From the IMG/VR virus record IMGVR_UViG_3300033183_000491, positions 175,551-239,550 of that record: 64,000 bases of DNA; one strand, written 5' to 3'. Both the position numbers and the translations under genes were made by a program. Positions 11,047-54,203 of this stretch are shown one piece after another. Below the pieces are notes generated by a model. The model had not been told where the DNA came from. It worked only from the letters and a program-made list of their open reading frames with translations, and searched no databases. Each line of letters opens with the position of its first letter. The first letter of the stretch is position 1.

Positions 11047-11520
11047 TTATTTGATGTTTAATAAAGCCCAATCTAAAACTTCACTTAAATAATCAGGTAA
11101 CTTATTTTTTATAGTCAAAGAATTAGATTCCCAAATAAATCCTTTATGTTCTTTAAATAAAGTTTTTTCATTCGGCAATATTTTAATATTTTTATTTAAA
11201 TCAGGAATTCCTTGAATATCTTCAACATCTAGGATGTATTCTCCTATATACATAACTAATCCATCACTGAATGTTTTATTTATATTATCTAGACAAACGT
11301 AATTTTTATTTATCTTTAATGAAGATTCTTCTTCAGTCTCTCTTATCGCACATGAGTATGAGTCTTCATAAGGATCAATTGCTCCTTTTGGAAAATCATA
11401 CATATCATTATTGTCGATTAACAATAAAAACAATATATCGTTAGGTTTATCTAAAATAATATTTTTTCTATTATCAAAATAAATTACAAAACCTGCTCCA
11501 GTAATCTCTTTGTTTAACAT
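11047..11520 (-). CDS. Nudix hydrolase
   Basis: Nudix box PKGAIDPYEDSYSCAIRETEEES. Confidence 0.88.
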   Translation of the reverse strand: MLNKEITGAGFVIYFDNRKNIILDKPNDILFLLLIDNNDMYDFPKGAIDPYEDSYSCAIRETEEESSLKINKNYVCLDNINKTFSDGLVMYIGEYILDVEDIQGIPDLNKNIKILPNEKTLFKEHKGFIWESNSLTIKNKLPDYLSEVLDWALLNIK

Positions 11521-11527
11521 AATTTTC

Positions 11528-13162
11528 TCACGCTATTATATAACTTTCAATAAAATTCTTTGGGAGATAGTGTTTATTTTTAGAATAAACTCTTTCCCAG
11601 TCTTTATCAAGTATATATGTTATTGCTTCGTCATCTTCAGATCTTATACTTCTACCGACACTTTGAATAACAGTCCTTATAGTCTGAAGGTCATACCACC
11701 ATTTCCATTTTTTGATTTTTTTGCCAACAACTTTATCGCCTAAATATGGAAATGGTATCTTGCATAATATTTGAAATTTTGATAAATCGCCTTTTAAATT
11801 AACGCCTTCAGCCATAGAAGGTGATAATAATATAGTAGGTTCTTTTGAGTTAATATGCCTTTCTAATATTTTATCTCTATTTTCACCAAAAGCAATTAAA
11901 ATCCTTCTAGACTTTATTTTTTTCTTAAGAAACTCTGCGATTTTTATATTGTGAGTATGAATTATACCTTTATCTTTAGGGTGATTTTTTATTATTTCTT
12001 TTATCATAGAAACCATTACAGGTAAAGTTTTATCAATGTTTTTCATAGACATACTTCCTGATGGTGAATATATTATTGGACTTTTGTTCGGTTCAAAAGG
12101 AGATTCTTCTCTAACGAAAACTGTCTTTTCAGTAGGAAGCCCTAACGTTAGTGAGAAACCTTCGTGAGACAAAATAGTAGCTGACATGAAGATTACATAG
12201 TCTGCATATTTCATCAAATAGTCATGAGCATATTCAGCAACTTCAATAGGTTTAAAAATAAATTTTCTATAACTTCCGTTACTATTGTCTATATCAAAAA
12301 CCCAATTATCTTTATCATATAAATTAATAAAGTTTAATATTTTTTTCTCGTGTGAAACGAGCATATCATATCTTTTTGTTATTTTTGTAAACTCTTCTAA
12401 TTTTTGAGTAGACAATCCAAATTTTTCCATTTGAGAAGATATAAACTTAATCTTTTTACTAACTTCAGGATAATAAACATTTTTAATCCAAAGAAAAGTT
12501 TGAAACTGTGTCTTTAAACTTTTGTCTATTTTCATTTTCAAGATCTTTTCTGCAAAATATTCCGAGATTGATATTTCAACAAATCTTGAAAGTTCATTTT
12601 CTAAATTATGAGCCTCGTCAACAATTAAGACTCTTTTGTTAGGGATTTTTTGACTATAAGATTTTTCTGTTAAAAAATAACTAAAGTTTGTTATTCCTAG
12701 ATTCTTTTCCATAAAATCTTTTTTTTGCTTTTTATAACAACAGTCATATCCACAACTATTAAACTTTTTAGGTATACTTTTAGATCTTAATCCTGTCTGG
12801 ATTTCTTTACAAGAAGTATTTCTATCGACATTACATTTATAATTTGTCGAAGAATATAAAGAAACTAAACCTGTAGATTTTGAAAAATCGTCTTCATATT
12901 GTTTTTGGAGTATTTTCTGAGTAGTTAAAAAATAAGCACCGTTTTCATATTCTTTTTCATATTCAGAATTATTTATTAATGATTGCGCAATTGTTAATCC
13001 AATTGCAGATTTACCTACGCCTGTCCCACAATCAACTATTGCATATTTTTTTCCATTTTTAAAATCTTCTAAGACTTTATTGATTACATTAGTTTGCTGT
13101 TGTCTAGGCTCTTTATAAGGAAAATATTTTTTCCAATCATTTATATTAATAGAATTATTCAA
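11528..13162 (-). CDS. DinG/Rad3-family SF2 helicase
   Basis: Q motif EPRQQQ, GTGVGKS, four Cys (Fe-S-like), DEAH, EGVNLKGD, QSVGRSIRSEDD. Confidence 0.88.
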   Translation of the reverse strand: MNNSININDWKKYFPYKEPRQQQTNVINKVLEDFKNGKKYAIVDCGTGVGKSAIGLTIAQSLINNSEYEKEYENGAYFLTTQKILQKQYEDDFSKSTGLVSLYSSTNYKCNVDRNTSCKEIQTGLRSKSIPKKFNSCGYDCCYKKQKKDFMEKNLGITNFSYFLTEKSYSQKIPNKRVLIVDEAHNLENELSRFVEISISEYFAEKILKMKIDKSLKTQFQTFLWIKNVYYPEVSKKIKFISSQMEKFGLSTQKLEEFTKITKRYDMLVSHEKKILNFINLYDKDNWVFDIDNSNGSYRKFIFKPIEVAEYAHDYLMKYADYVIFMSATILSHEGFSLTLGLPTEKTVFVREESPFEPNKSPIIYSPSGSMSMKNIDKTLPVMVSMIKEIIKNHPKDKGIIHTHNIKIAEFLKKKIKSRRILIAFGENRDKILERHINSKEPTILLSPSMAEGVNLKGDLSKFQILCKIPFPYLGDKVVGKKIKKWKWWYDLQTIRTVIQSVGRSIRSEDDEAITYILDKDWERVYSKNKHYLPKNFIESYIIA

Positions 13163-13234
13163 TTATATTCCTATACTTTATACTTATATATTAAAACATT
13201 TTACATAACAAATTATAGGAAATTAATATTAAAT

Positions 13235-13690
13235 TTACATATTTTTAGTCAAAATTTGATTTATTATTATTCGACCATGTTCGGGAGAATCACAATATAT
13301 TGTTTCTGTAGTATTATTATCAAAATATAAAGTAACAATGTCAGATCCAGAAGATGTACACGTTCCTATTTCAGTATTAACAATATCATTAAAAGATAAT
13401 ACTTCAGATGGAGTTATGACTCCTGAGTTATCTCCTGATAGTTTGCTTGTTTTAGCAGTCTGTAAGTTTCTTCCTAAATTAGACTCTGATAATAGTAGAT
13501 CTTGATATAAATTAATAGATATTTCTTTAATATGTTTTTCTCTAAAGTATCTCTTATTTGAATTATAATATAAGTTCTCGACTATATTTTTTACATCTTT
13601 ATATGAAGAATTTTTGTCCAAATTATTTTTTAAATAATTTGATTCTGATATTGACAAATGTATCTTGCAGTTGTTATACTCTAAAAACAT
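13235..13690 (-). CDS. Hypothetical protein
   Basis: 151 aa ORF coupled to 13690..13953. Confidence 0.55.
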   Translation of the reverse strand: MFLEYNNCKIHLSISESNYLKNNLDKNSSYKDVKNIVENLYYNSNKRYFREKHIKEISINLYQDLLLSESNLGRNLQTAKTSKLSGDNSGVITPSEVLSFNDIVNTEIGTCTSSGSDIVTLYFDNNTTETIYCDSPEHGRIIINQILTKNM

Positions 13691-13953
13691 TATAATTTCT
13701 CTTCTTTATTATCATCTTTATCGAAAATATCTACAGCAGCATTAATATATTTATCTAACGCAGCTTGACCAAGAATATATCCTATTTGAATAATACCACT
13801 AGTTATAACAACTGTTAATAAAAATGTAAGTTCTTCGGGATCTAGTTTACTTTGGAGATGCATTAGCATATATAAAATAATTGCTTTCCAACCTAAATCA
13901 GCTATAATATATGCAATAAACTTTTTACTTTTTAAAGGAGTTTTATCTAACAT
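13690..13953 (-). CDS. Small two-TM membrane protein (holin-like size)
   Basis: Two hydrophobic segments, charged tail. Confidence 0.6.
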   Translation of the reverse strand: MLDKTPLKSKKFIAYIIADLGWKAIILYMLMHLQSKLDPEELTFLLTVVITSGIIQIGYILGQAALDKYINAAVDIFDKDDNKEEKL

Positions 13954-14021
13954 AGGAATATTTCTTTCTTTATCTTGTATTTATAAATATTTATTACATA
14001 TAGGATAATTAGCGTGATAAA

Positions 14022-14276
14022 ATGAAAACTAAAATACCAAAACTTTTCTTTGATAGTGATGAAACAATCGAATTTTCTCCTGAAGACATTGATTGGAATG
14101 ATGAGACAGTCTGTATTCTCTGTATGAGAAAAGTTTGTATTTGTACGATTCAAAAATGTCCGTGTGGAATATCTTCTGATCAATGTAATTGGCCAAGTGA
14201 TTTTTGCCCTTGTCAAAAATGTGACAATTTGCTTATAAATTGTCAATGTAAAATTTATATTAAGAAAGAAGATTAA
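14022..14276 (+). CDS. Cys-rich small protein (12 Cys) with acidic N-terminal half
   Basis: CILC..CIC..CPC..C..CPC..C..CQC; 2 nt upstream of cyclase gene. Confidence 0.65.
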   Translation: MKTKIPKLFFDSDETIEFSPEDIDWNDETVCILCMRKVCICTIQKCPCGISSDQCNWPSDFCPCQKCDNLLINCQCKIYIKKED

Positions 14277-14278
14277 TA

Positions 14279-15181
14279 ATGTCTATAAATAATGATAAAA
14301 ATAATATAGAAGACAATTTTTCAATTTCTAATAGACTTGATAAAAATACTGTTGAAGCATATATTGCAATTGTATTAACTGATATTATTGGTAGTACAAA
14401 GTTTGTTCAAAAGAATGGTGCAAGGGTCGCAGCAAAGTGGTTTGGAGCACATGATAAAGCTGTTATGAATTATATCGCAAGACATAACGGGCAACTAATA
14501 GATGCTTCTGATGGTCATTTAATGATGTTCGCTACAGTGGCTGATGCAATTGGTTTTGCTTTTGAATATAAAAAGTTTTTAAGACAAAAAAAATTTCCTT
14601 TTAGAAGTCGAGTAGGTATTCATTGGGATAAAATGCTTATTGTTAAATCTGAAGCTCATATGGTTAGAGCAGGAGGAAAAAGAATTAATCTGGAAGGTAT
14701 TGGAAAAAATATTGCTGCAAGGACAATGTCTATTTGTGGAGAAGAACAAATCCTTATGTCAAAAGAAGCTTATTTTCAATATAAGAAATTTGGACACAGA
14801 AGTAGATTCATTCCTGAAAGGGCACTATCAGCACTTGTTGGACTTTATTCATTTAAAGGTGTATTAGAGCCAGAAGCAATTTACGCAATTGGTCTCGTTC
14901 AAGCACAATTACAACCACCTCCAGATGGAGAAAAAGCTAAAAGAATAGGCGGGGCAAAAAAAATAAAGACTAGACTAAGAGATAAACAATTAAAAGAACT
15001 TTTCCTTTGGTTTTACAATAAACTTTTTATCGTAACTTTTATTTATCTTTTAATAAGTCTTATTCATATCTCGAGAAACTATCATGAAAACACTATTTTT
15101 TATAATTTGTTTGGCCTAGATTTAAGTAAAATTTTATATTATATTAATCAAATTATAAATATTGTTTTAGAATGTATTTAA
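14279..15181 (+). CDS. Class III nucleotide (adenylate/guanylate-type) cyclase with C-terminal hydrophobic segment
   Basis: LTDIIGST, ASDG, RVGIHWD, KNIAAR, QILMS; catalytic D, D, N, R present. Confidence 0.82.
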   Translation: MSINNDKNNIEDNFSISNRLDKNTVEAYIAIVLTDIIGSTKFVQKNGARVAAKWFGAHDKAVMNYIARHNGQLIDASDGHLMMFATVADAIGFAFEYKKFLRQKKFPFRSRVGIHWDKMLIVKSEAHMVRAGGKRINLEGIGKNIAARTMSICGEEQILMSKEAYFQYKKFGHRSRFIPERALSALVGLYSFKGVLEPEAIYAIGLVQAQLQPPPDGEKAKRIGGAKKIKTRLRDKQLKELFLWFYNKLFIVTFIYLLISLIHISRNYHENTIFYNLFGLDLSKILYYINQIINIVLECI

Positions 15182-15703
15182 AGGATATTGAGTTATTGTA
15201 CACTCAAAATAATCATGATTAGTAATGTTAGAATCAGTAAAAGGTGAACCTCCAGGGACGGCATAATAAGGACTACAGTCTCCTCCTGAGATTCTTATTT
15301 TTGATTCTAAGACTACATTGCAGAATTCTGTTCCAATACTTCCACCACCGTTGTCAAAATCTAAAAAAACTTTTCCGATTAAAGTAACTGAACCTGAACC
15401 TGAATTTTTATTTATCGAACAAGTTTTCCTATTCTTTGAATAAGCGAAAGAACTAGCGTTAGTATTGTTAGCAAAAGTAAATCTATATTTTGCAATGATA
15501 TGATAATCACCCTCAGAAAGACGACGATCATAATTTCCATTTGAAGAAAAAAGAGACTCGGGATCATTTAAAACTAAATTATCAGTAGTAGGATGTCTAG
15601 GAAACATCGTTTGAAAATATGTCAAAGCAAATCCAGTATTACTTGCTGATGTGTCCGTGTATATTCTTGCTACTTTTGGGCTCGAAGATTTTATATATGT
15701 CAT
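15167..15703 (-). CDS. Small beta-rich virion/fibre-tip-like protein (MTY class)
   Basis: Starts MTYIK, ends YPLNTF like 15717..16244. Confidence 0.6.
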   Translation of the reverse strand: MTYIKSSSPKVARIYTDTSASNTGFALTYFQTMFPRHPTTDNLVLNDPESLFSSNGNYDRRLSEGDYHIIAKYRFTFANNTNASSFAYSKNRKTCSINKNSGSGSVTLIGKVFLDFDNGGGSIGTEFCNVVLESKIRISGGDCSPYYAVPGGSPFTDSNITNHDYFECTITQYPLNTF

Positions 15704-15716
15704 TTTGATTTCTTTC

Positions 15717-16244
15717 TTAGAATGTATTTAAAGGATATCTTTTAGCATTAACTATATATTCATTAGTTGAAGACATATTACTGCCTCCAGTGCTGCTAGT
15801 GAATGGATGACTTGTAAACTTTATAGAGGCATTTGAGTTTGAAACTCTACACAGAAAATCTGCTGATATGTCTAAAACATTAACATTACCTGATCTATTT
15901 GCTCTAAATCTACCTGAACTTAGACTTGTCACAGTTCCTGTACCTGTATATCTTGCTGGATTTATATTAGTATTACTTATATAATTAGCTTGGCTAATAG
16001 GTTCTTGACTATAAGTTATTTTCCATCTTAAATTTATATCATAGTCTCCAACAGGTAAAGTCCAAGCATCTACTGCTATCGTACATAATCCTGTCGGATC
16101 ATCTAATGTAATATTAGGTGTGCTATAATCAAAATGTAGAATCCCACTTTGAAAAACCCAGTCTGCAGAATAAACAGGTTGAGCGTTTGTATAAAACTTA
16201 ATTAAGTCTGGAGAAGAGCTTGTCGTTTGAATAATATAAGTCAT
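15717..16244 (-). CDS. Small beta-rich virion/fibre-tip-like protein (MTY class)
   Basis: Starts MTYII, ends YPLNTF. Confidence 0.6.
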   Translation of the reverse strand: MTYIIQTTSSSPDLIKFYTNAQPVYSADWVFQSGILHFDYSTPNITLDDPTGLCTIAVDAWTLPVGDYDINLRWKITYSQEPISQANYISNTNINPARYTGTGTVTSLSSGRFRANRSGNVNVLDISADFLCRVSNSNASIKFTSHPFTSSTGGSNMSSTNEYIVNAKRYPLNTF

Positions 16245-16260
16245 TTTTCTTCTATTTCTC

Positions 16261-16617
16261 CTATTTTATATTTACAAGTATTAAATTTGAAGACAATCTA
16301 TCTTCTCCATTGTAACTATTAGGAGAAACTAATCCACAACTAGATGATTCGCTTACGTAAACACCTCCAGGTTCTACTGATAGGTGTCCTCCTGAATCTG
16401 GAATGTCTCTTGATGCTTTGGCTAAGCAAACTCCTGAAAATTGGATTTTTGACAAATATTTTTCTTGATTGTCTTCATCTTGAACTGGGTTTGTTACTAT
16501 TACTCCCCAAGGATGAGATTCACTAGAAGTTAAATGTCTCCAATTTCCATTTACAGGATCATATTCAACAATATCACCTAATTCAACAGTGTTTTCAACA
16601 TAACATTTTATAAACAT
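16261..16617 (-). CDS. Hypothetical structural protein, paralog of 20276..20626
   Basis: G.IVEY...W...FSG.C.A.A.R.IP..GG...V...G.(V/I)SP shared. Confidence 0.65.
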   Translation of the reverse strand: MFIKCYVENTVELGDIVEYDPVNGNWRHLTSSESHPWGVIVTNPVQDEDNQEKYLSKIQFSGVCLAKASRDIPDSGGHLSVEPGGVYVSESSSCGLVSPNSYNGEDRLSSNLILVNIK

Positions 16618-16632
16618 AAATATTCCTTTTAA

Positions 16633-17187
16633 TTATAGTTTTATAACTTTACAATAAGCAGTACCAGCATTAGAAGTAGGTTGTCCAACAGAGCCTGATA
16701 CATCTTGGACTCTAAAATAATATTCAGCTCCAACAGATTGGTTATCTATCACAGCATGTAATGTACTTGGATAATTTTCTCCAATTGTATCGATTCCATA
16801 ATAAGCCTTAGGGCCCATTGGATTATCTGAAGCGTCGACTATTTGTACAACAATATATTCAGAAGTATTGTTAATATCAAAATGAAAAACAACTTCTACG
16901 GAATAGTATCCTATCGAATTTAACTTTATTCCCATCGCGTAATTAGAATTACTTTTAATTGCACGCCCATCAGCATTTACCCATTCAAAAATACTCGAAT
17001 CAATATAGTCTATTGAATATATTCCTTTATGTATTTGAGCATTTTGGCCTACTGAAGCATTGTTTGACGTTGCACTGTGGATCATCCTTGTAGTCACGCC
17101 ACCTATACCATAAGTTGAAGAATAATTAATATTCCCAGAGTAATCTGGGTGATTATTAGTATTTATTTTTGTAACATTATGAGACAT
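16633..17187 (-). CDS. Fibre-tip-like protein (MSHN class)
   Basis: MSHNVTKIN..PD.SGNI N-terminus; similar to 20637..21278. Confidence 0.6.
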   Translation of the reverse strand: MSHNVTKINTNNHPDYSGNINYSSTYGIGGVTTRMIHSATSNNASVGQNAQIHKGIYSIDYIDSSIFEWVNADGRAIKSNSNYAMGIKLNSIGYYSVEVVFHFDINNTSEYIVVQIVDASDNPMGPKAYYGIDTIGENYPSTLHAVIDNQSVGAEYYFRVQDVSGSVGQPTSNAGTAYCKVIKL

Positions 17188-17190
17188 ACA

Positions 17191-17718
17191 CTATTCTACT
17201 TTCCAAATATAAATTGCAGAATATTCAGAAGGTTTTACACCTTGATTAGCTATAGAGTCAACTTGAGAAACTCCACCAATTCTAAAATCATAAGATGTTG
17301 TCGATGTCACATTGAGATATGCTGTACCCCACCCGTTAGACTGTTCAGAAGAAGCTGAAGATCCTACAGCACATCTTCCATATATTGTTGAAGAATTCAT
17401 TAAATCACATCTAACGTACCAAGACGAAGAAACTGACTCTAGATTTAATGACCATTGGACTATAAATTTACCCGCGGGAAATGTAATCGATGTACACCAA
17501 TTATTAACTGTTGTAAAACTTAATCCCGCTATAGTATTAACAGGGCTAGTATCATAAAAATAATAACTATCATTTAATGCTAATCCTGTAGCAGGACTAT
17601 TAGAATAGTTATTTGACTCTCCTCGTCCAAATACTGCAAAACTAGTCGAAGAAGGTATTTCAATATCACTTAAAATATCTGGAGATGAATTATTTACTTC
17701 TATTAAATTATGACTCAT
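17191..17718 (-). CDS. Fibre-tip-like protein (MSHN class), paralog of 21280..21948
   Basis: Start revised to MSHN ATG overlapping upstream TAA; C-terminus ANQGVKPSEYSAIYIWKV vs ANQGNKPSEFGLIYIEKV. Confidence 0.65.
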   Translation of the reverse strand: MSHNLIEVNNSSPDILSDIEIPSSTSFAVFGRGESNNYSNSPATGLALNDSYYFYDTSPVNTIAGLSFTTVNNWCTSITFPAGKFIVQWSLNLESVSSSWYVRCDLMNSSTIYGRCAVGSSASSEQSNGWGTAYLNVTSTTSYDFRIGGVSQVDSIANQGVKPSEYSAIYIWKVE

Positions 17719-18323
17719 TAGATAATCTCCCAATTAGTTCCAGTTGAAACAAGTGTGATAGCTGAATATTGAACATCGAGTACATAATCTGTAGTTGAAC
17801 CATCGATAGTTTGAGTTTGAGGGTCTATTGTGATCGTACCGTCACCCATATTCTTAATTCGAATCTCTTCCCCAGAACTTACCCCACTCGTTGGTAATGT
17901 AATAGTAAAAGTTCCTATACAAGAATAATGATAACCTGTTTGTGCGTTAGCAGGATCAGCTGTTATAGCACTATAAGTATATCCACCACCACCACCACCT
18001 GCATTTGCTGTTACATATGCCTGTGTCGCCAACTTATCAGCAGATTCACCTGATTTTGCAAAAGTGATATCACCATCACCATCAATGCCAACGTCTCCTC
18101 CGTCAAACTTGATACTGTTGTTGCTTAGATACAAGTGTCTAACTTTATTCTCTGCTTCACCGATATCGTAAGTTGAATTAGCAGCAGGAATTATATGGCC
18201 TTCGGAAGTAATATCCCATCGAGAAGAATTGTCAGTAGTAAAATTAATATTACCATCTGAGCCTGAGTCTAATATTATAACTTCTGAATCTTGGTTACTA
18301 ATTTTATTTTTTAAATATGTCAT
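17718..18323 (-). CDS. Short tail-fibre-like protein
   Basis: GHIIPAANSTYDIG...RHLYL module, ATQAYV, poly-G linker, T.TLP...G..I.IK...ID C-terminal module. Confidence 0.65.
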   Translation of the reverse strand: MTYLKNKISNQDSEVIILDSGSDGNINFTTDNSSRWDITSEGHIIPAANSTYDIGEAENKVRHLYLSNNSIKFDGGDVGIDGDGDITFAKSGESADKLATQAYVTANAGGGGGGYTYSAITADPANAQTGYHYSCIGTFTITLPTSGVSSGEEIRIKNMGDGTITIDPQTQTIDGSTTDYVLDVQYSAITLVSTGTNWEII

Positions 18324-18379: not shown

Positions 18380-18853
18380 ATGTCAAATAAAGAAGAAAAA
18401 ACACAAAAGCAGTTTACTCAAACTGAAAAGGCCAAAAGAGGGTGGTGGTTTAGCGTCGTTTTTATGGTACTTGTTATATGTTTAATAATGTTCCTTGCCT
18501 TCATTCCTTTACAACAGGACAATCGTGATATCATCGTGGGTATGATTGGTATGATTACTGGCGCGATATCATCAATGCTTTCAATAGCAGCAGGTCGTGA
18601 CCCTTCTGAAGTAGAAGAACTTAAAGACAAACTATCTTCAGCGAATGCTGATAGAGCGGCTTTGATTGGTAGATTAAGAGATTCTCAAATACAAATGCAA
18701 TTACTCAGAGAACAAATATTTGAATTGCAGTCTGCTGTAATCGATAAACTTTCAGTTTTTAAAGGACAGCACCCAATTAAAACAAAAGATGTAAGCCAAG
18801 TTGTTTTGCACGATGAAGTAGCTGAATGGCTTCCAAGAATAGAGGACAAATAA
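18380..18853 (+). CDS. Two-TM membrane protein with coiled-coil C-terminus
   Basis: Two hydrophobic helices then heptad-rich region; GAGGA SD. Confidence 0.65.
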   Translation: MSNKEEKTQKQFTQTEKAKRGWWFSVVFMVLVICLIMFLAFIPLQQDNRDIIVGMIGMITGAISSMLSIAAGRDPSEVEELKDKLSSANADRAALIGRLRDSQIQMQLLREQIFELQSAVIDKLSVFKGQHPIKTKDVSQVVLHDEVAEWLPRIEDK

Positions 18854-47333: not shown

Positions 47334-47406
47334 CCTCCTATAGCTCAGCGGTTAGAGCAGCACTCTTATAAGGTGAAGGTCCCCAGTTCAATCCTGGGTA
47401 GGAGGA
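47334..47406 (+). tRNA. tRNA-Ile(TAT)
   Basis: Acceptor CCTCCTA/TAGGAGG, D arm GCTC/GAGC, loop CTTATAA, TTCAATC T loop; no encoded CCA. Confidence 0.85.
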
Positions 47407-47440
47407 CTTTAACATTTTAAACTTATACAAGGATATTATC

Positions 47441-47635
47441 ATGACACACGCTACATACACAACCTTCAACAATCAGACTGATGTTTTCGTTTCATTCTCA
47501 GCAGTTTCTCATGTTATCAATGACAAAGAATCAGGATGTTGGATTTGGTTTCACAGTGGAAAATGCATTCATGTAACAGAGAGCATGTCTGAAGTTACTG
47601 ACGACATGGTAGATTATTTCTCAACTAGAAAGTAA
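47441..47635 (+). CDS. Hypothetical protein
   Basis: AAGGA SD. Confidence 0.6.
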   Translation: MTHATYTTFNNQTDVFVSFSAVSHVINDKESGCWIWFHSGKCIHVTESMSEVTDDMVDYFSTRK

Positions 47636-47639
47636 TTAA

Positions 47640-47945
47640 ATGAATCTAACGGTTAAAGAATCATTCTTATTAAGACAAGGATTTGGAAAAAGTAATATTT
47701 TCTTTCCTGAGAATTCTAGAATTAAGTTTATTAAAGAAACTTATAGTTTTTATCACTCTTATTATAAGTCGCACAGTTATAAAATTCTAATTCATTTTAA
47801 AACAATTCCGATTGAATTAGATCTTCAAAAGAAGACTGATAGGGAAACTTACGAAGTTATGAAATGTAATCTTATTCATAAAAACTTGAGTCAAATAACT
47901 TGGAATGATTTATTTAATGAGGAATGTCCATTAAGTGTAACTTAA
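47640..47945 (+). CDS. Hypothetical protein
   Basis: Packed ORF. Confidence 0.55.
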   Translation: MNLTVKESFLLRQGFGKSNIFFPENSRIKFIKETYSFYHSYYKSHSYKILIHFKTIPIELDLQKKTDRETYEVMKCNLIHKNLSQITWNDLFNEECPLSVT

Positions 47946-48005
47946 TAAAATTTGTATTATAATATTTAAAACATCATTCAATCATATATTCATAAGAGTT
48001 AAATC

Positions 48006-48170
48006 ATGAAAAATGAAGATATATCAAGTATACTATATCTTGTTACTTTTGTAACTTTAGTTTTTTCCTTAATTTATCTTATTACTTTGTTTCCAACATA
48101 TTTTTCAGGTTTTTTCTTTGGAATAGTATCATATTCTTTGCTTGATGCATTCAATAAAAAAGACTTGTAA
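48006..48170 (+). CDS. 54-aa membrane protein
   Basis: Promoter 47935; hydrophobic. Confidence 0.5.
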   Translation: MKNEDISSILYLVTFVTLVFSLIYLITLFPTYFSGFFFGIVSYSLLDAFNKKDL

Positions 48171-48196
48171 AAGATATTCTATTATAGGCGGTTATT

Positions 48197-48394
48197 ATGG
48201 AAAAATATTTTTCTTATGTAGGTACACATTCTCTTGAAGAAGCAAAACAGAATAATACTGTAAATATAATATTTCATTTGTCTTCAAGAGAAATTGCTAT
48301 TAAAAGATGTGATAGAACATGGAAAGACAAAGAATATTCTCTATATACCTTTGAAAACTTTCAAAACAACTCAACATTTACTAAGATTATATAA
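48197..48394 (+). CDS. Hypothetical protein
   Basis: Packed ORF. Confidence 0.55.
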   Translation: MEKYFSYVGTHSLEEAKQNNTVNIIFHLSSREIAIKRCDRTWKDKEYSLYTFENFQNNSTFTKII

Positions 48395-48403
48395 GGATTT
48401 TAT

Positions 48404-48688
48404 ATGGATTATTATGACTTTGCAGAAACAGCTGCTGTAATTGAAAAAGAACTTGGTATTAGAATGCATTTAGATATTGTGTTTAATAATCAGTTATTAA
48501 ATAAATACTTTAACTATTCTTATAATAAAAAAGAAGACATTTTAACTATTAATTTTGAATTAGATGAAGGCAGCGCGACTATGAACATATATGAATTATA
48601 TTCAGAAGAAGTCGATGATTTTGATTATGATTTTAATGATGTTCTTAAGAAACATATAGAGAATCTAGGTAGAACATGGACAGAGTAA
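48404..48688 (+). CDS. Acidic hypothetical protein
   Basis: AAGGA SD. Confidence 0.6.
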   Translation: MDYYDFAETAAVIEKELGIRMHLDIVFNNQLLNKYFNYSYNKKEDILTINFELDEGSATMNIYELYSEEVDDFDYDFNDVLKKHIENLGRTWTE

Positions 48689-48945
48689 TCTTTATGTTTA
48701 AAGAAAAGGTTTATGCAAGAATAGTTACAGATTTTCAAGATCAAAACATCGACATTGATCAAACAAATGAATATACTATGTATGAACTTCACAGGTCAAT
48801 GAAAGATCTTAAAAAATACTCGGAAGTTTTTATTAACCCTAGCAATCCAAAACAACTGATAGCGACATCAAAAGGACGTCTTCTTTCAATAGAAATCTTG
48901 TCAGAAATAACTTGGTTTGATTTAGATTATTATTATGGACAATAA
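48676..48945 (+). CDS. Hypothetical protein
   Basis: Packed ORF; start uncertain. Confidence 0.55.
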   Translation: MDRVIFMFKEKVYARIVTDFQDQNIDIDQTNEYTMYELHRSMKDLKKYSEVFINPSNPKQLIATSKGRLLSIEILSEITWFDLDYYYGQ

Positions 48946-49048
48946 ATGAACTGTTATTATGATTATTTTATTAATGCTTGTGTCTGTGAACAGCAAGTAG
49001 AAAATATTCCCCTTTCAGAATTATTTCTTTTTGTTATTGAGATTTTTA

Positions 49049-49345
49049 ATGTATAAACTTATATTGTTTCTTTCTATGACGTTTTTTTTGTTTTATGGCT
49101 GCACTGATGCTGAACTCACAAAGTTTACAACATTAGGTCAAAAAGCAGAAATTATTTGTCGAAGTGGTGGTATAATATCTTTTCATGGTATCTCAACTGG
49201 TAAAGTATTAAATGAAAAAAACAGCGATGGATATTATGCTAAATGGGAAATAATCCAAGCCCCAGATTACAAACATTCAAAAGCTGGAGATTTTAGAACA
49301 GCAACACTTTCAAGTGATTGTAATATTATTTATATCGAAGACTAA
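49049..49345 (+). CDS. Putative lipoprotein
   Basis: Leader ending FFLFYGC; CTDA..K...LG..A.I.C.SGG pattern. Confidence 0.65.
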   Translation: MYKLILFLSMTFFLFYGCTDAELTKFTTLGQKAEIICRSGGIISFHGISTGKVLNEKNSDGYYAKWEIIQAPDYKHSKAGDFRTATLSSDCNIIYIED

Positions 49346-49369
49346 AACATGAAAACGGGAGTAATTTAA

Positions 49370-49738
49370 TTGACTATTAAGAACATTCTTTTTATCCTTA
49401 CTGTAATATTAATTGGTTGTGAAGCAGAACAAAAAAGTATTAGTAACGTTGATTTCTTGTTAGATTCTGGTTATCAAAACCTAGAATGCAAATTAAAATA
49501 CAATATCGAAGATAATACATACGAATCTTTAGCAGAAGTAATCCCAAAATCTAATAAACTTGAAATGCTTTTAGCAAGATGTATAAATGATAAATGCGAT
49601 TATTTTTCATTAGAATCAAAAATAATGCCTGCAAAGATTTTATGTCAAAAGTTCTATTCGAACAATAAAACTGAATATGATTTTAATCAAATTGTTCTTA
49701 CTTATAACACTGAATATTTTAAAGATATTAAAGAATAA
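49370..49738 (+). CDS. Putative lipoprotein
   Basis: Leader ending VILIGC; GGGAG SD. Confidence 0.6.
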   Translation: MTIKNILFILTVILIGCEAEQKSISNVDFLLDSGYQNLECKLKYNIEDNTYESLAEVIPKSNKLEMLLARCINDKCDYFSLESKIMPAKILCQKFYSNNKTEYDFNQIVLTYNTEYFKDIKE

Positions 49739-49812
49739 TTTGTGTAAATATAAGTTTTATAAGTTATAATAATATATAATAAATACTTTCTTAAAATTTA
49801 AAGGAGAATATA

Positions 49813-50004
49813 ATGAATATTCCATATATTAGCTTAATGCTTCTTTATCTAATTCCAATTAGTGCAATGCTCGTAATTAATTCTTCGAAAGATATTAAAG
49901 ATATCTCTAAGAGAGTTAAAGAGGGAGATTACCTTGTAATTGTAGAAAAATGTGCTGCTCCTATTTTGTCATTAGGAATTATGTCTTCTTTTTATCTATA
50001 TTAA
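49813..50004 (+). CDS. Small membrane protein
   Basis: Promoter 49742, AAGGAG SD. Confidence 0.6.
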   Translation: MNIPYISLMLLYLIPISAMLVINSSKDIKDISKRVKEGDYLVIVEKCAAPILSLGIMSSFYLY

Positions 50005-50008
50005 AACT

Positions 50009-50296
50009 ATGATGAAAAATATTATTGATTATGATCTTGGAGATATTTCTATAAAGAAAGTTTCAAATGGATGGATCTTACTGGAAGGTTCTCCCCTTGA
50101 AGAAGGAAAAGTTATTTTTTCTGCATATGAATCTAAAGAAGCTTATGAGATTAATAAATCTGACTCCACTGAAGATGCTAAATCTCTTAAAAGGCTTCTA
50201 GAAGATGTCTTTTCAGGGTATTTAAGATCTAAACATTACGGTGGTCTAGAAATCAAATTCCATGAAAGTGGATATGAAATCGAAGATCAAGAATAA
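50009..50296 (+). CDS. Hypothetical protein
   Basis: ISIKKVSNGWIL motif. Confidence 0.6.
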   Translation: MMKNIIDYDLGDISIKKVSNGWILLEGSPLEEGKVIFSAYESKEAYEINKSDSTEDAKSLKRLLEDVFSGYLRSKHYGGLEIKFHESGYEIEDQE

Positions 50297-50397
50297 AAAT
50301 TCAAAAGATTAATAAAAATTAATTTGTGTAAATTTAAACCAATTAGGTTATAATAAACCATAAGGTAAATATTAAAAAACATTTTATAGGATAAATA

Positions 50398-50559
50398 ATG
50401 ACTACGCACATTTCATTGTTTCAATTTGGATGCGAAATTTTTGGTTACGATAATGCTATGAAAATGAACTCTAATAAATTAAGATCATATTATGATGATT
50501 GGAAAACTACAACATATTCTATTAAACAATACAAAGCTCTACTAAACACGAGAGGATAA
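50398..50559 (+). CDS. 53-aa hypothetical protein
   Basis: Promoter 50326, AGGA SD. Confidence 0.5.
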   Translation: MTTHISLFQFGCEIFGYDNAMKMNSNKLRSYYDDWKTTTYSIKQYKALLNTRG

Positions 50560-50564
50560 TTAAA

Positions 50565-50951
50565 ATGTCTAATTTTCAAACTTATATTTATGATTACCTA
50601 AATGAGAAGCTAGGAAGCGACAACGGCACTTCTGAAAAATGGTGGAGTTGGAAGCATGGTATTTTATACCCTAACACTAAAAATATTGATATTGATTTAG
50701 AAAAAAACTTGCTTAATAACAATGTAGTTGTTGGGTTTAATTTTGATACTACACTTTGCAATCAAAAAGATATATCAAGGTTTTTAAAGTCACTAAATGT
50801 AAACTATAAAGACGATACTGATAGTAGGAATAAAAATAATAACTTGAGACTAAAAGTTTGTTTTTCAAATGAAAATACTGATGTTAATCGATTTATATTT
50901 AAATCGATCATGAGGTATTCTTTTATTAATAAAAACATTAGTATTAACTGA
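50565..50951 (+). CDS. Hypothetical protein
   Basis: GAGGA SD. Confidence 0.6.
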   Translation: MSNFQTYIYDYLNEKLGSDNGTSEKWWSWKHGILYPNTKNIDIDLEKNLLNNNVVVGFNFDTTLCNQKDISRFLKSLNVNYKDDTDSRNKNNNLRLKVCFSNENTDVNRFIFKSIMRYSFINKNISIN

Positions 50952-50954
50952 TCT

Positions 50955-51263
50955 ATGAAAGAAGAGCATTTGTTATTATTTTCTAAATATAAAAGTGAAT
51001 ATTCAAATCAATTATCGAAAATACTCTTAGCTGATGAAGATGATCTTTTTTTCTTAGATAAAAAAATAGACTCAGACTTATATAAAAGGTTTATTAAAAC
51101 ATCAACAAGTTCAGGAAGTTTATCTTTTAAAATTGAGAAAAGTAATTATAAAATAAAACTAATGTCTATATTTGGGATACCTTATTTACTTGACGAAAAC
51201 AATGGTTGCAATCATATTGTAATCAAAAAATTTGATCTATCAAGAGTTCCTAATAATCTCTGA
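50955..51263 (+). CDS. Hypothetical protein
   Basis: Packed ORF. Confidence 0.55.
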   Translation: MKEEHLLLFSKYKSEYSNQLSKILLADEDDLFFLDKKIDSDLYKRFIKTSTSSGSLSFKIEKSNYKIKLMSIFGIPYLLDENNGCNHIVIKKFDLSRVPNNL

Positions 51264-51366
51264 TAGATTTAGAATCAATATTTCTATATTGACTTTTACT
51301 TAGTTCTATTATTATATAATGGTTCTAAGTTACCCAAACTATTTTATCTATTTGAAAGGACATACA

Positions 51367-51762
51367 ATGGGAAACATGATGTTTGACACTAACCGCTTTA
51401 TCGAGAACACTTCAGTCAATCAAATGAAAAACGGAACAATTCAGTTTATGGATACATATAATCCAGGAGTATATTATACAGCACATAGGAATGGAACAGT
51501 AAACCGAGTTATTAAGACAAACGAAACAGTTATCACACACGATGGAACTAATACAACTCAACAAAATGTAAGAATGAAGACTGAGTATAATCGAATTAAC
51601 TATCGCCCTTCTAGTAATAGAAACGATTTTGTTCGTCTATATCGACTTTCAGATCAACTAGGAAGAATCCAAGAAGTTGCTGCATATTATCAACCAAGAA
51701 ATAATAAAACAATGAATGTTTCAAAATCTGATTCACAAACTATTATTACAACTCCTCGTTAA
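51367..51762 (+). CDS. Hypothetical protein, paralog of 38818..39147
   Basis: QMKNGTIQF...YYTAHRNGTVNR; start revised to ATG after AAGGA. Confidence 0.65.
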   Translation: MGNMMFDTNRFIENTSVNQMKNGTIQFMDTYNPGVYYTAHRNGTVNRVIKTNETVITHDGTNTTQQNVRMKTEYNRINYRPSSNRNDFVRLYRLSDQLGRIQEVAAYYQPRNNKTMNVSKSDSQTIITTPR

Positions 51763-51844
51763 TTTTGTTTAACATCTAATACATAAATAATATAATACAT
51801 AATGAACTTCTTTTGATAAACATATATTTTAAGAAGTTCACTAT

Positions 51845-51917
51845 GGGCCTTTGTTGTAATGGTTAGCATCGCACTCTCATAAAGTGTTTGGTCTGGGTTC
51901 AAGTCCCAGGGGGCCTA
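51845..51917 (+). tRNA. tRNA with CAT anticodon (Ile2 or Met)
   Basis: Anticodon arm GCACT-CTCATAA-AGTGT, T arm CTGGG-TTCAAGT-CCCAG; acceptor has several G:U pairs; no CCA. Confidence 0.75.
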
Positions 51918-52226
51918 CTAGTTTATTTTTTTGCCGCTAAAACTTTTGTCTTTAGTCTTAGAGAAAATATATCCTCCTCTTTCATAATCACGATTATTAC
52001 TCTTGTCTGAGATTAATTCTTCAACGCTTTCAGGGAGTTCTCCGTAACTATGATCATATTCTATGATATCAATATTTAATTCTGGGAAAATTTCTCCTGA
52101 TGTATTTAAAGAATGAATATTTTGAAAGGCGTCTTTTGTAAGTTGACTTTGATACTTTTCATTGATGAAGTTATTATTCCATTCTGTTAATAACTCTTTA
52201 AACTCTCTTCTATTTAATTTGCCCAT
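51918..52226 (-). CDS. Hypothetical protein (lone minus-strand gene in the right arm)
   Basis: FKELLTEWNNNFINE N-terminal motif like left-arm proteins; AAGG SD. Confidence 0.55.
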   Translation of the reverse strand: MGKLNRREFKELLTEWNNNFINEKYQSQLTKDAFQNIHSLNTSGEIFPELNIDIIEYDHSYGELPESVEELISDKSNNRDYERGGYIFSKTKDKSFSGKKIN

Positions 52227-52303
52227 TGAATAAACCTTTTAATTTTTTATGTGTAAATTAATTATTAACTTATTATAATAATAAAAAAAAGTTAGGATAT
52301 AAA

Positions 52304-53599
52304 TTGTCAAATAAAAAAAACGATTATAGAATTAAAAACATTGATCTAGCAAATTGGGGTCTTAAAGAAGTTAAGATTGCTGAAAAAGATATGCCAGGCC
52401 TTATGTCATTAAGAGAAAAATATTCTGGAACAAAACCTTTAACTGGAGCTAGAATATCTGGATGTTTGCATATGACAATTCAGACAGCAGTTTTAATTGA
52501 TACTTTAGTTGAACTTGGTGCTGATGTGAGATGGATGACATGTAATATTTATAGCACTCAAGATCATGCAGCTGCTTATATTGCGAACAAGGGAATTCCT
52601 GTTTTTGCATGGAAAGGAATGTCTGAGTCTGAATATGATGAATGTTTAAATGATGTTATTTGGTTTGGAGACCAAGGACCAAATATGATCTTAGATGACG
52701 GTGGAGACTTAACTAAATTTATTATTGAAGAACACCCTGAATTAATAAATGAGATTAGAGGAATCTCTGAAGAAACAACAACTGGAGTTCTTAGACTTAG
52801 AGAATATGAACAACAAGGAAAACTTCCAGTTCCAGCAATTAACGTCAATGATTCTGTAACAAAATCAAAATTTGATAACAAATATGGATGTAAAGAAAGT
52901 TGCGTTGATGCTATTAGAAGAGCAACTGATACTATGATGGCTGGTAAAGTTGCAGTTGTTGCAGGATATGGTGATGTTGGTAAAGGATCAGCAGCCTCTT
53001 TAGCATCTTCAGGATGTAGAGTTATTGTGACAGAAATCGATCCTATTTGTGCTCTTCAAGCTGTTATGGATGGATTTAAAGTAACTACAATGGAAGAAGC
53101 TGTTAAAGATGCAGATATTATTGTTACAGCAACAGGAAACTTTAATGTAGTTAATGAAAAACATTTTAAACTAATGAAAGATAATTCTATTGTCTGTAAT
53201 ATTGGTCACTTTGACAATGAGATTGATGTTAAATGGTTAACGAAAAACACTGAAGAAGTTAATATAAAACCTCAGGTAGACATGTATAACTTTGATAATA
53301 AGTCAATTATTCTTCTTGCTAAAGGAAGATTAGTTAATCTAGGTTGTGCAACAGGTCATCCAAGTTTTGTAATGTCTGCATCTTTTACAAATCAGGTTCT
53401 TGCTCAAATTGAATTATGGTCTAAATCGTCTTTCTATGAGAATAAAGTTTATGTTCTTCCAAAAATTCTTGATGAAGAAGTTGCAAGACTTCACTTAGAA
53501 AAAGTTGGAGCAAAGTTAGAATCATTAGACAAAAACCAAGCTAAATATATTAATGTTAATGTTGAAGGTCCTTTTAAAACAGAAGATTATAGGTATTAA
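52304..53599 (+). CDS. ahcY: Adenosylhomocysteinase (SAH hydrolase)
   Basis: [86 protein letters not shown]-terminal YRY. Confidence 0.97.
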
Positions 53600-53989
53600 A
53601 TGAGATTTATAATAGACGAAGTTATTTCTGAAAATTATTCTCCACGAAAAATTAAAGAAATGAAAAGTAATCTTGTAGATATTTTTACAGAAATCCACAA
53701 GATAAAAGATTGGAAATGGGAAATTTCTGAAGAAACAATGCAAATATGTATTAGAACAGGAAGATCTTATCAAGATAACTCTCAAGATACTGACCCTACT
53801 ATATGGATTGCATTAATCTGGGCAAATAAAAAAGGGTCAACTAGGTCACCAGAATGTGACAGAGAAATATTTATTTCTAAAGCAACAGCAAATAAATCTT
53901 CTGATTTACAAAATGTATATACATATCATTCGTACTCAGATCTTATCCAAAAATACAATTCAGGTAATTTAAAAAATATTATAAAATAA
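53600..53989 (+). CDS. Hypothetical protein
   Basis: Starts immediately after the ahcY stop. Confidence 0.6.
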   Translation: MRFIIDEVISENYSPRKIKEMKSNLVDIFTEIHKIKDWKWEISEETMQICIRTGRSYQDNSQDTDPTIWIALIWANKKGSTRSPECDREIFISKATANKSSDLQNVYTYHSYSDLIQKYNSGNLKNIIK

Positions 53990-54156: not shown

Positions 54157-54203
54157 CTCCCGTAATTTAACAATTACACACAGACACAGAAAGAAGTTTT
54201 ATT

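Follow-up and report, generated by a model that had tools for sequence, protein, structure and literature searches.

We find that an uncultured marine jumbo phage carries a membrane-anchored, apparently active class III-type nucleotide cyclase with an unusual base pocket, preceded by a 12-cysteine protein (Cys12), and that the constant partner of this cyclase across about 80 phage lineages is a highly conserved small membrane protein (p157). The window analysed is a stretch of 64,000 nucleotides (positions 175,551 to 239,550 of IMG/VR record IMGVR_UViG_3300033183_000491), and it forms part of a complete virus genome of 239,550 bp with terminal repeats. An earlier note, made from the sequence alone, had drawn attention to Cys12 and the cyclase, and its observation is confirmed by our analyses, while its interpretation is supported only in part. 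Neither the product nor the biological role of the cyclase was identified.

Organisation of the locus

The features of the locus are summarised in Table 1. The TAA stop of Cys12 (14274-14276) is followed by 2 nt and then by the ATG of the cyclase, and no alternative genetic code was used. The earlier note described these two genes as a divergent pair, yet they are co-directional with each other, and it is as a pair that they diverge from the upstream minus-strand gene TM87. Promoter-like matches in the region between TM87 and Cys12 were not in excess over shuffled sequence (39 found against 30.6 +/- 5.4), and consequently no promoter is claimed; a scan for terminators likewise gave no excess. 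The ORFs are not chance, given that a word search recovered 464 homologues of the cyclase, of about 290 aa, and that the cysteines of Cys12 are invariant among its homologues (see below).

Table 1 Features of the cyclase locus, in coordinates of the 64,000-nt window
Feature	Coordinates	Strand	Description
TM87	13690-13953	-	87 aa; two TM helices (residues about 12-30 and 44-62) and a charged C-terminus
Intergenic region	13954-14021	.	68 bp, between TM87 and the Cys12-cyclase pair
Cys12	14022-14276	+	84 aa; acidic N-half, exactly 12 Cys in the C-half
Cyclase	14279-15181	+	300 aa; tail-anchored class III-type nucleotidyl cyclase
Cyclase homology domain plus conserved C-terminal extension	14342-14968	+	residues about 22-230
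Asp35 codon (TDIIGST)	14381-14383	+	metal Asp
Asp75 codon (LIDASDG)	14501-14503	+	at the adenine-specifying Lys position
Asp78 codon (LIDASDG)	14510-14512	+	metal Asp
Arg111 codon (SRVGIH)	14609-14611	+	phosphate-binding
Asn137 codon (RINLEG)	14687-14689	+	at the specificity Asp position
Asn144 codon (KNIAAR)	14708-14710	+	transition-state Asn
Arg148 codon (KNIAAR)	14720-14722	+	transition-state Arg
Lys193 codon (FKG)	14855-14857	+	phosphate-binding
C-terminal membrane helix	14999-15070	+	residues about 241-264
Inserted block	15167-18323	-	six genes (178, 175, 118, 184, 180 and 201 aa); not part of the module
p157	18380-18853	+	157 aa; basic N-terminus, TM hairpin (about 26-44 and 51-69) and cytoplasmic coiled coil of about 85 aa

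The predicted cyclase

An AF2 model of the cyclase (pLDDT 81.5, although residues 126-133, next to the base pocket, are modelled poorly) was matched by Foldseek to the minimal mycobacterial class III adenylyl cyclases Ma1120 (PDB 4wp8, 5d0e) and the Rv1900c catalytic domain (1ybt, 1ybu) at TM 0.90 and E 1e-13, with rmsd 2.3-3.3 A and 21-24% identity, and of 187 PDB matches at E<=0.001 the top-ranked are cyclases. All eight residues listed in Table 1 are invariant in 24 family members. In profile alignments to the solved cyclases made with HMMER, the metal Asp pair, the phosphate Arg and the transition-state Arg align with those of the mycobacterial enzymes, and Asn144 and Arg148 fall on the transition-state pair (His/Arg in Rv1900c); the roles assigned to these positions rest on established class III structural knowledge. 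Cyclisation of an NTP to a 3',5'-cNMP, which in this class depends on dimerisation, was not assayed.

The base pocket carries neither the canonical Lys/Asp pair for ATP nor a Glu/Cys-type pair for GTP. Asp75 aligns with the Lys of Ma1120 that differs (Lys to Glu) between the wild type and the 'KDA to EGY' mutant chain 5d0g, and the beta2-beta3 turn is one residue shorter in the phage protein. In the Rv1900c alignment, Asn137 falls on the position that we take as the substrate-specifying Asp (the Asp of TDVAG), seven residues before the Asn/His position. The earlier note gave this second residue as N/E, but it is Asn137, and Glu139 lies two residues later. One strong hydrophobic segment is present (residues 241-259), following a basic linker (KAKRIGGAKKIKTRLRDK) and followed by a further amphipathic or hydrophobic tail that runs to the stop, with AF2 helices at 238-266, 268-278 and 287-299; the tail varies in sequence but is present in all homologues. 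Unlike this protein, the mycobacterial enzymes have no membrane tail and no p157-like partner.

A potential alternative is that the domain is a pseudo-enzyme or nucleotide-binding sensor, which binds NTP or metal without cyclising it and serves as a scaffold for the membrane partners. The non-canonical specificity pair would be compatible with this, the Pfam cyclase model (PF00211, Guanylate_cyc) does not match the window protein at E<=0.1 (the relatives P0136, P0145 and P0148 score 19-23 bits, around the 21.9-bit cut-off), and most bacterial relatives have Pro or Ala in place of the catalytic Asn, such that the subclass as a whole may include non-catalytic domains. However, the phage clade keeps the catalytic residues, including Asn144 and Arg148, over more than 80 lineages (Asn144 in all but a few of the p157-linked cyclases), which is hard to explain without catalysis, and we consider this reading very unlikely.

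Relationship to the TIGR04510 subclass

The likeness to the Xanthomonadales 'putative peptide modification system cyclase' family suggested in the earlier note is real. The best family match is NCBIfam TIGR04510 (E 9e-33), but it spans only positions 7-204 of the 814-position model and scores 113.7 bits against a cut-off of 400, whereas true members score 546-878 bits. The phage protein lacks the C-terminal TPR-like body of about 600 aa and the gene context of that family, and so it is not a member, although homology of the N-terminal cyclase domain holds. A profile search returns a large bacterial subclass that shares this domain of roughly 200 aa, with 926 representative clusters at E<=1e-10, in which it is fused to TPR, STAND NTPase, Ser/Thr kinase, ECF sigma and PEGA domains. 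Shared signatures are an Asp at the Lys position within an I-D-x-(S/T)-D-G turn (Asp in 147 of the 150 best representatives), Lys134, Glu139, the RxGIH motif, FKG and a conserved extension after the domain. The phage protein differs in having Ala76, Asn137 and Asn144 where the bacterial proteins have Lys/Arg, Glu and Pro/Ala, and in ending in a membrane helix. The short TM-tailed forms cluster together (support 0.85). Pocket residues 72, 73, 76 and 137 switch together in the subclade of the window protein; we considered treating the covariation of positions 76 and 137 as statistical evidence but rejected this, as it marks essentially one clade and counts as one event. In one bacterial locus, a true TIGR04510 gene is start-overlapped by a cNMP_binding+GGDEF gene, which fits cNMP output from this subclass. 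No enzymatic data exist for the subclass, and we found no paper mentioning TIGR04510 and, with the terms used, none on a phage class III cyclase.

Cyclase domains are already present in viral sequence databases, showing that viruses carrying them are not unheard of. A search of BFVD found the fold in uncultured Caudovirales (A0A6J5KRX6, A0A6J5RWB7) and giant viruses (Foldseek E 5e-10 to 8e-5), yet identity is only 11-18%, the architectures differ (response regulator, CHASE2-type sensor and kinase fusions), none belongs to this family and, as far as our searches show, none has been characterised.

p157, the near-obligate partner

The earlier note missed the near-obligate partner of the cyclase, which is not Cys12. 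p157 is found in the same locus and on the same strand as 80 of 86 distinct phage cyclases and, conversely, 79 of 80 loci found through p157 contain the cyclase. Of 78 distinct modules with the order cyclase then p157, p157 starts within 150 nt of the cyclase stop in 73, and 55 overlap the stop, most often by 4 nt; five others carry insertions of 1.2-1.8 kb. In the window the two genes are separated by a 3.2-kb insertion, the 201-aa protein of which has a tail-fibre/spike-like N-terminus, and this block varies between strains in metagenome contigs. p157 keeps about 67% identity where the cyclase domain has fallen to 40-50%, and 39 columns are invariant in 22 diverse sequences. Its second TM helix is rich in Gly/Ser/Thr and strongly conserved (GxxGMITGSISSMxxIAxG). 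Searches of p157 against Pfam and PHROGs gave only sub-threshold hits of TM composition, a profile search of PDB sequences found nothing, and a search of the Atlas returned only viral 'hypothetical protein' clusters. Binding between the cyclase and p157 was not tested, and the two were not co-folded.

The upstream TM87 gene, also missed by the earlier note, is a frequent further member of the module. A homologue lies beside the cyclase in all 23 related loci of our first set, and it is present for 35 of the 86 distinct cyclases. In loci that we label L015-17, L020, L024 and L048, it is co-directional, in the order TM87, Cys12, cyclase, p157, in a different genomic context, so that these genes move together, while in loci L051-55 it lies downstream of p157. 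Its only database lead is an insignificant PHROG holin hit (E 0.09).

The Cys12 protein

The earlier note had named loss of the Cys-rich ORF beside cyclase homologues as an outcome that would count against it, and on this point its reading stood: 31 of 86 distinct cyclases have a Cys-rich ORF directly upstream, across lineages with 26-60% G+C, and where present Cys12 always lies directly upstream of, or overlaps, the cyclase start. The pattern is C-x2-C-x4-6-C-x-C-x4-5-C-x-C-x6-C-x-W-P-x1-4-C-x-C-x2-C-x5-6-C-x-C, and all 12 Cys (within about 46 residues) and the WP motif are invariant in 16 homologues down to 31% identity. A second 12-Cys type (type B) also occurs, and 10 Cys columns are invariant across 30 sequences. 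We regard Cys12 as a probable Zn-binding accessory subunit. The paired CxxC and CxC motifs resemble those of small zinc-ribbon, rubredoxin-like or Zn-cluster proteins, and the nearest named Atlas clusters are zinc ribbons and rubredoxin-like proteins, but at scores of 0.80 or less, which is a lead only. All 16 members searched against Pfam, and a profile searched against PDB sequences, found nothing, the Cys spacing with its invariant C-x-W-P matches no pattern that we could place, and the AF2 model (pLDDT 55) was unusable for fold search; these observations leave membership of a zinc-binding family undecided, and metal binding was not measured. A co-fold of the cyclase domain with Cys12, a check proposed in the earlier note, scored 0.00 and returned no verdict, which is evidence neither for nor against binding.

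The earlier note also suggested that Cys12 could be a precursor-like peptide, and the name of TIGR04510 and the acidic, leader-like N-half of Cys12 could be read as a peptide-modification system in which the cyclase-like protein acts in maturation of a RiPP-like precursor. This is not supported, and we consider it a remote possibility. No SagB/nitroreductase or other maturation enzyme was recognised in the module, two thirds of phage modules lack Cys12, and the Cys-rich half is the conserved part rather than a variable core, which fits a folded metal-binding domain better. Moreover, the small peptides next to true bacterial TIGR04510 genes (bacterial loci L163 and L165), which do have nitroreductase neighbours, are NHLP-like, carry zero or one Cys and are unrelated.

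A proposed phage membrane signalling module

We suggest, with moderate confidence, that the genes noticed first are one half of a phage-specific membrane signalling module, with the cyclase and p157 as its core pair and TM87 and Cys12 as accessories. That the cyclase domain has the class III fold with a full catalytic set, and that its base pocket is non-canonical, is shown by our analyses; the remainder of the scheme is inference. In this view, the domain faces the cytoplasm, held at the host inner membrane by its C-terminal helix, dimerises like other class III enzymes and converts an NTP into a 3',5'-cyclic nucleotide during infection. The product may not be cAMP, an inference of low confidence, as by residue logic an Asp plus Asn pair would suit guanine at least as well as adenine. 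p157 would supply in trans a membrane hairpin and a coiled coil, the parts that canonical membrane cyclases (for example mycobacterial Rv1625c) carry in cis before the catalytic domain, and would either control the cyclase or be the target of its product; this is an analogy only, with no test made here and no homology shown, and here the cyclase also has its own C-terminal anchor. Cys12 would be a Zn-binding regulatory subunit, translationally coupled to the cyclase and dispensable in two thirds of lineages. No PF00027 domain was found in the phage genome, and given the absence of a canonical cNMP-binding domain the signal would be read either by a host receptor or by p157. The host, and therefore any host receptor, was not identified.

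A simpler hypothesis is that the enzyme is an ordinary adenylate cyclase acting as an auxiliary gene, whose cAMP drives the CRP-type regulon of the host, with pocket residues that do not change specificity and neighbours that are merely syntenic. The closest solved structures are adenylyl cyclases, Rv1900c and Rv0386 lack the Lys/Asp pair yet are mainly adenylyl cyclases, JGI names homologues 'class 3 adenylate cyclase', and the lack of a phage cNMP receptor makes a host receptor plausible. However, the near-invariance of Asp at the Lys position across the subclass, the joint switch of the pocket residues and the near-obligate, translationally coupled linkage to p157 across phages of 26-60% G+C argue against it, and we consider it unlikely.

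It is also possible, though improbable, that the module is a phage-borne signal-and-effector system resembling Pycsar, in which a cNMP opens or assembles p157 into a membrane lesion, either to exclude competing phages or to time lysis, with TM87 as a holin-like helper. The pairing of a cyclase with a small TM protein mirrors Pycsar, the Gly/Ser/Thr-rich helix of p157 and the size and topology of TM87 (those of class II holins) are compatible with it, the whole set of proteins is membrane-bound, and a non-purine product is not excluded. PADLOC PycC models match only weakly (best E 7e-6 and 23.6 bits over residues 20-169, five-fold weaker in bits than TIGR04510), a score that does not settle kinship to PycC either way. 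Against this reading, no effector with a cNMP-binding domain fused to TM or TIR is adjacent, p157 and TM87 have no such domain, the coiled coil of p157 has no PDB or Pfam match, no endolysin was recognised nearby, the module sits in varied genomic contexts rather than in lysis cassettes, and it is carried by lytic-looking phages. The suggestion in the earlier note that the module interferes with Pycsar defence is not supported, as nothing in our data speaks to that role.

A more speculative and unlikely reading, which our evidence nonetheless leaves standing, is that many uncultured aquatic phages carry their own second-messenger circuit, a split membrane cyclase in which p157 (with TM87) senses the state of the host envelope and gates cNMP synthesis, or is itself gated by the cNMP to form a membrane lesion, making a non-cAMP nucleotide to time lysis or shut out competing phages, with Cys12 adding a metal or redox input. 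This would be a virus-encoded cyclic-nucleotide signalling system with a new receptor or transducer family.

Known interactions of phages with cyclic-nucleotide signalling are mostly destructive, in that they degrade or sponge the immune signals of the host, whereas here a phage-restricted family appears to make a cyclic nucleotide itself. That its partner is conserved far more tightly than the enzyme points to a constrained machine or a conserved host target. Furthermore, a small, soluble phage version with intact catalytic residues would be a convenient entry point for finding what this uncharacterised subclass makes.

Distribution

Among 50,697 GenBank phage records, we found no blastn match for the locus and no tblastn match for the cyclase, p157 or TM87, although the distant relative P0133 matched one gut phage at 28% identity. 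Scans of prokaryote genomes with p157 (185,579 genomes) and with the cyclase profile found no relative, but the DNA patterns used were narrow, such that only fairly close relatives would have been seen; no prophage copy was found, and so there is no host lead. The helicase places the phage far from cultured phages, with Bacillus phage G the best match at 33%. In sequencing reads, the only RNA run gave one 82-nt metatranscriptome contig on the cyclase at about 90% identity, which is too weak to claim expression, while DNA contigs from marine and estuary runs carry Cys12 and the cyclase contiguously. Overall, the family is found in marine, estuarine and other aquatic viral contigs of 26-60% G+C.

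Organisation of the locus

The virus record from which the window derives is a complete genome of 239,550 bp with direct terminal repeats, of which the window (30.6% G+C) spans bases 175551-239550. The features considered here are listed in the table. An earlier note, made from the sequence alone, had described a Cys-rich protein followed by a class III cyclase with atypical base-specificity residues, and this observation is confirmed: the first ORF encodes 84 aa, with an acidic N-half and exactly 12 Cys in its C-half, the second encodes 300 aa and starts two nucleotides after the stop of the first, and the motifs that the note had read in the second (TDIIGST, LIDASDG, RINLEG and KNIAAR) are all present. 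The two ORFs are, however, co-directional, and it is as a pair that they diverge from a minus-strand gene for an 87-aa protein with two TM helices (TM87). The NUDIX hydrolase, helicase and 151-aa unknown protein on the minus strand are syntenic with the module in most close relatives, yet they are absent upstream of the module in the related loci L015-17, L020 and L024, and no functional link between them and the cyclase is evident. The window also carries seven tRNA genes further along (Ile-TAT, Met, Thr-TGT, Asn, Leu-TAA, Lys-CTT and Arg-TCT), four of them in a tight cluster.

Coordinates of features in the window and in related loci (L numbers denote loci fetched for comparison)
Sequence	Position	Strand	Feature
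Window	11047-13690	-	NUDIX hydrolase (157 aa), ResIII/Helicase_C_2 helicase (544 aa) and 151-aa unknown protein
Window	13690-13953	-	TM87, 87-aa protein with two TM helices
Window	14022-14276	+	Cys12, 84-aa protein with 12 Cys
Window	14274 (and 14273)		Cys12 stop codon, variable in metagenome contigs
Window	14279-15181	+	Predicted class III cyclase, 300 aa
Window	15167-18323	-	Inserted block of six small genes (178, 175, 118, 184, 180 and 201 aa)
Window	18386-18359	-	Sigma-70 consensus match
Window	18380-18853	+	p157, 157-aa homologue of the partner protein
Window	47334-54767		Seven tRNA genes
Window	54458-54767		Cluster of four of these tRNA genes
L163	4970-8502		Bacterial true TIGR04510 gene, overlapped at its start by a cNMP_binding+GGDEF gene
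L081	3693-4819		Distant TM-tailed cyclase P0133 in a phage baseplate cluster
L024	2704-2991		Small ORF with 4-5 Cys upstream of the cyclase
L078	3762-4001		Small ORF with 4-5 Cys upstream of the cyclase
L067	3240-3440		Small ORF with 4-5 Cys upstream of the cyclase

The predicted cyclase and its subclass

Pfam searches find nothing in the 300-aa protein, even at E 0.1, whereas NCBIfam TIGR04510 matches over roughly its first 200 model positions at E 9e-33, with 113.7 bits against a cut-off of 400. This is the 'putative peptide modification system cyclase' family that the earlier note had suggested as a likeness. PADLOC models of PycC, the Pycsar cyclase, match only weakly, at 23.6 bits. An AlphaFold2 model built on 24 homologues has pLDDT 81.5 and superposes on the mycobacterial class III adenylyl cyclases Ma1120 and Rv1900c at TM 0.90.

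Profile alignments to these chains place Asp35 and Asp78 on the metal-binding Asp positions, Arg111 on the Arg of the RxGIH motif (which we take to be the phosphate-binding Arg), and Asn144 and Arg148 on the transition-state pair. Asp75 falls on the substrate-specifying Lys, the residue that differs (Lys to Glu) between wild-type Ma1120 and the 'KDA to EGY' mutant chain in the alignments, although the hairpin turn is one residue shorter in the phage protein, and Asn137 falls on the position that we take to be the specificity Asp of Rv1900c. All of these residues are invariant in the family, and the protein therefore has a complete class III catalytic set with a non-canonical base pocket. The domain is followed by a conserved basic linker and a hydrophobic helix at residues 241-264.

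The earlier note had proposed a profile search and a tree as a means of placing the enzyme. A full HMMER search of 1.84 billion representatives returned 2,423 relatives at E<=0.001 and 926 at E<=1e-10, the nearest of which are short proteins with the same C-terminal membrane tail. Further out, the same domain of roughly 200 aa sits at the N-terminus of long bacterial proteins, and those sampled carry TPR arrays (the true TIGR04510 members), STAND NTPases, Ser/Thr kinases with or without WD40, an ECF sigma factor plus kinase, or PEGA domains. In a census of key columns among the 150 best hits, position 75 (the Lys position) holds Asp in 147 of 150 sequences overall, as in the window's protein, while at position 76 the bacterial forms have Lys or Arg where the window's protein has Ala, at position 137 they have Glu where it has Asn, and at position 144 (the catalytic Asn position) they have Pro or Ala where it has Asn, so that the phage form retains the catalytic Asn.

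In a FastTree of the domain the short TM-tailed forms cluster together with support 0.85. Within that clade most members read GREIDRSDG...VELEG, whereas the window's subclade has switched several pocket residues together, to GQLIDASDG...INLEG. As this represents a single lineage-level event, we treat it as a description and not as covariation statistics. In bacterial locus L163, a true TIGR04510 gene (878 bits) is overlapped at its start by a gene for a cNMP_binding+GGDEF protein, and is followed by a 78-aa NHLP-like peptide and a nitroreductase/SagB gene. This arrangement fits production of a cyclic nucleotide by this subclass, and hints that the 'peptide modification system cyclase' feeds a cNMP to c-di-GMP relay, but it is a single case.

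The Cys-rich protein

Whether the Cys-rich gene is conserved beside cyclase homologues had been set out in advance as a point on which the earlier reading could fail. While a word search with the protein found only six homologues, reading the DNA upstream of cyclase homologues revealed many more, and among 86 distinct phage cyclases 31 have a Cys-rich ORF (eight or more Cys, mostly exactly 12) that ends within a few nucleotides of the cyclase start or overlaps it. Two types exist: type A, as in the window, has an invariant C-x-W-P, and type B has the pattern HDCDDDDCDCGVDCSCC. Across 30 sequences with 24% mean column identity ten Cys columns are invariant, and within type A all 12 Cys and the WP motif are invariant down to 31% identity. 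It is therefore a real gene, linked to the cyclase but dispensable. Some modules (L024, L078 and L067) carry a small ORF with a signal-peptide or lipoprotein-like N-terminus and 4-5 Cys directly upstream of the cyclase, either instead of Cys12 or in addition to it.

Nothing identifies the fold of Cys12. Pfam and PDB searches found no match, the AF2 model has pLDDT 55, and the nearest named Atlas clusters are zinc ribbons, at scores that count as leads only. A co-fold of the cyclase with Cys12, one of the analyses the earlier note had called for, came out neither for nor against an association and is not used as evidence. The note had also suggested that the Cys-rich protein may be a precursor-like peptide. 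However, the small peptides beside true bacterial TIGR04510 genes are NHLP-like, have zero or one Cys and are unrelated, and they sit beside nitroreductase/SagB genes, which the phage module lacks. Consequently a precursor-peptide reading is unlikely, and a folded Zn-binding subunit is the best guess.

A conserved membrane partner

In related loci the gene directly after the cyclase encodes a protein of about 157 aa (p157), which the earlier note had not identified. In this window its homologue lies 3.2 kb downstream, separated from the cyclase by a block of six minus-strand genes. The linkage of the two genes is close to absolute. Of 86 distinct cyclases, 80 have p157 in the fetched locus on the same strand, 78 of them in the order cyclase then p157 and two in the reverse order. 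Among those 78, p157 starts within 150 nt of the cyclase stop in 73, with 55 overlapping it, most often by 4 nt, and five carry insertions of 1.2-1.8 kb. The six cyclases without p157 include cases where the contig ends or an insertion runs beyond the fetched flank. Conversely, 79 of 80 loci fetched with p157 as query contain the cyclase, and the exception is a contig with an insertion like the window's.

p157 has a basic N-terminus, a TM hairpin whose second helix is rich in Gly, Ser and Thr, and a coiled coil of about 85 aa. It is conserved far more tightly than the enzyme, keeping about 67% identity where the cyclase domain has dropped to 40-50%, with 39 invariant columns in 22 diverse sequences, and this holds in contigs ranging from 26 to 60% G+C. 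TM87 accompanies 35 of the 86 cyclases, and in several lineages the order TM87, Cys12, cyclase, p157 runs on one strand in a different genomic context. More distant TM-tailed cyclases are also phage-borne, and have a different TM-plus-coiled-coil ORF upstream. One of these (P0133 in locus L081, with the motif IDKTDG and Pro at the catalytic Asn position) sits inside a phage baseplate cluster (Phage_base_V, gp25-like), where a 102-aa TM-plus-coiled-coil ORF abuts its start, and locus L082 has the same pair.

Potential mode of action

The interpretation offered in the earlier note is partly supported, the main addition being that the two genes it described belong to a larger, phage-restricted and strongly conserved membrane module with p157 as its constant partner. 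What is already familiar here is the class III cyclase itself, while the virus-specific setting and the partner family are new. Our analyses show a class III fold with all catalytic residues conserved, a C-terminal membrane helix, a near-obligate and mostly translationally coupled linkage to p157, frequent linkage to TM87 and Cys12, and a base pocket that is non-canonical and varies between lineages. Beyond this we infer, without direct demonstration, that the enzyme dimerises at the cytoplasmic face of the host inner membrane and makes a 3',5'-cNMP during infection, that p157 either regulates it or receives its signal, and that Cys12 adds a metal- or redox-dependent input in the lineages that keep it. 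As a regulator, p157 would supply in trans the TM and coiled-coil parts that canonical membrane cyclases carry in cis.

The identity of the nucleotide is not settled by these data. By residue logic Asp plus Asn could suit guanine, yet Rv1900c and Rv0386, relatives that lack the canonical pair, remain adenylyl cyclases, and we consider cAMP and another product about equally likely. No evidence obtained here decides the biological purpose of the module, for which host reprogramming, lysis timing and exclusion of competitors are all possible. The phage genome has no cNMP-binding domain.

Distribution and strain variation

No record among 50,697 GenBank phage records searched matches the cyclase, p157 or TM87. 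Scans of one genome for each of 185,579 prokaryote species likewise found no relative of p157 or of the phage cyclase, although the DNA patterns used were narrow, such that only fairly close relatives would have been seen. The helicase of the phage is at best 33% identical to that of Bacillus phage G. A structure search in BFVD shows a few other viral proteins with the cyclase fold, at 11-18% identity and with other architectures. The presence of such a domain in a virus is therefore not unique, but this family and its module are. In the literature searched no paper mentions TIGR04510, and none found with the terms used describes a phage class III cyclase.

Near-identical DNA occurs in marine, seawater and estuary metagenomes from several studies, where contigs carry Cys12 and the cyclase contiguously. 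Expression is not shown, as the single RNA run gave only an 82-nt contig at about 90% identity on the cyclase. The block inserted between the cyclase and p157 varies between strains in metagenome contigs, with a depth hole at 15229-15590, joints at 15212/15468 and 15520/15660, and replacement of 18197-18303 by 612 nt in two runs. The first two of its six genes share a C-terminal ...YPLNTF ending, and the 201-aa protein has a tail-fibre/spike-like N-terminus (PHROG E 2e-9). The block looks like a hypervariable receptor-binding or host-range cassette. A perfect sigma-70 consensus (TTGACA, 16 nt, TATAAT; 12 of 12 matches) lies just upstream of the 201-aa gene, in the gap before p157, though across the scanned region as a whole promoter-like matches are not in excess of shuffles. 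In marine metagenome contigs of two sequencing runs (X1 and X2), the Cys12 stop codon TAA reads CAA, and the next codon, TAA at 14277-14279, then ends the protein one residue later and overlaps the cyclase ATG by one base (TAATG), which keeps the tight coupling of the two genes.
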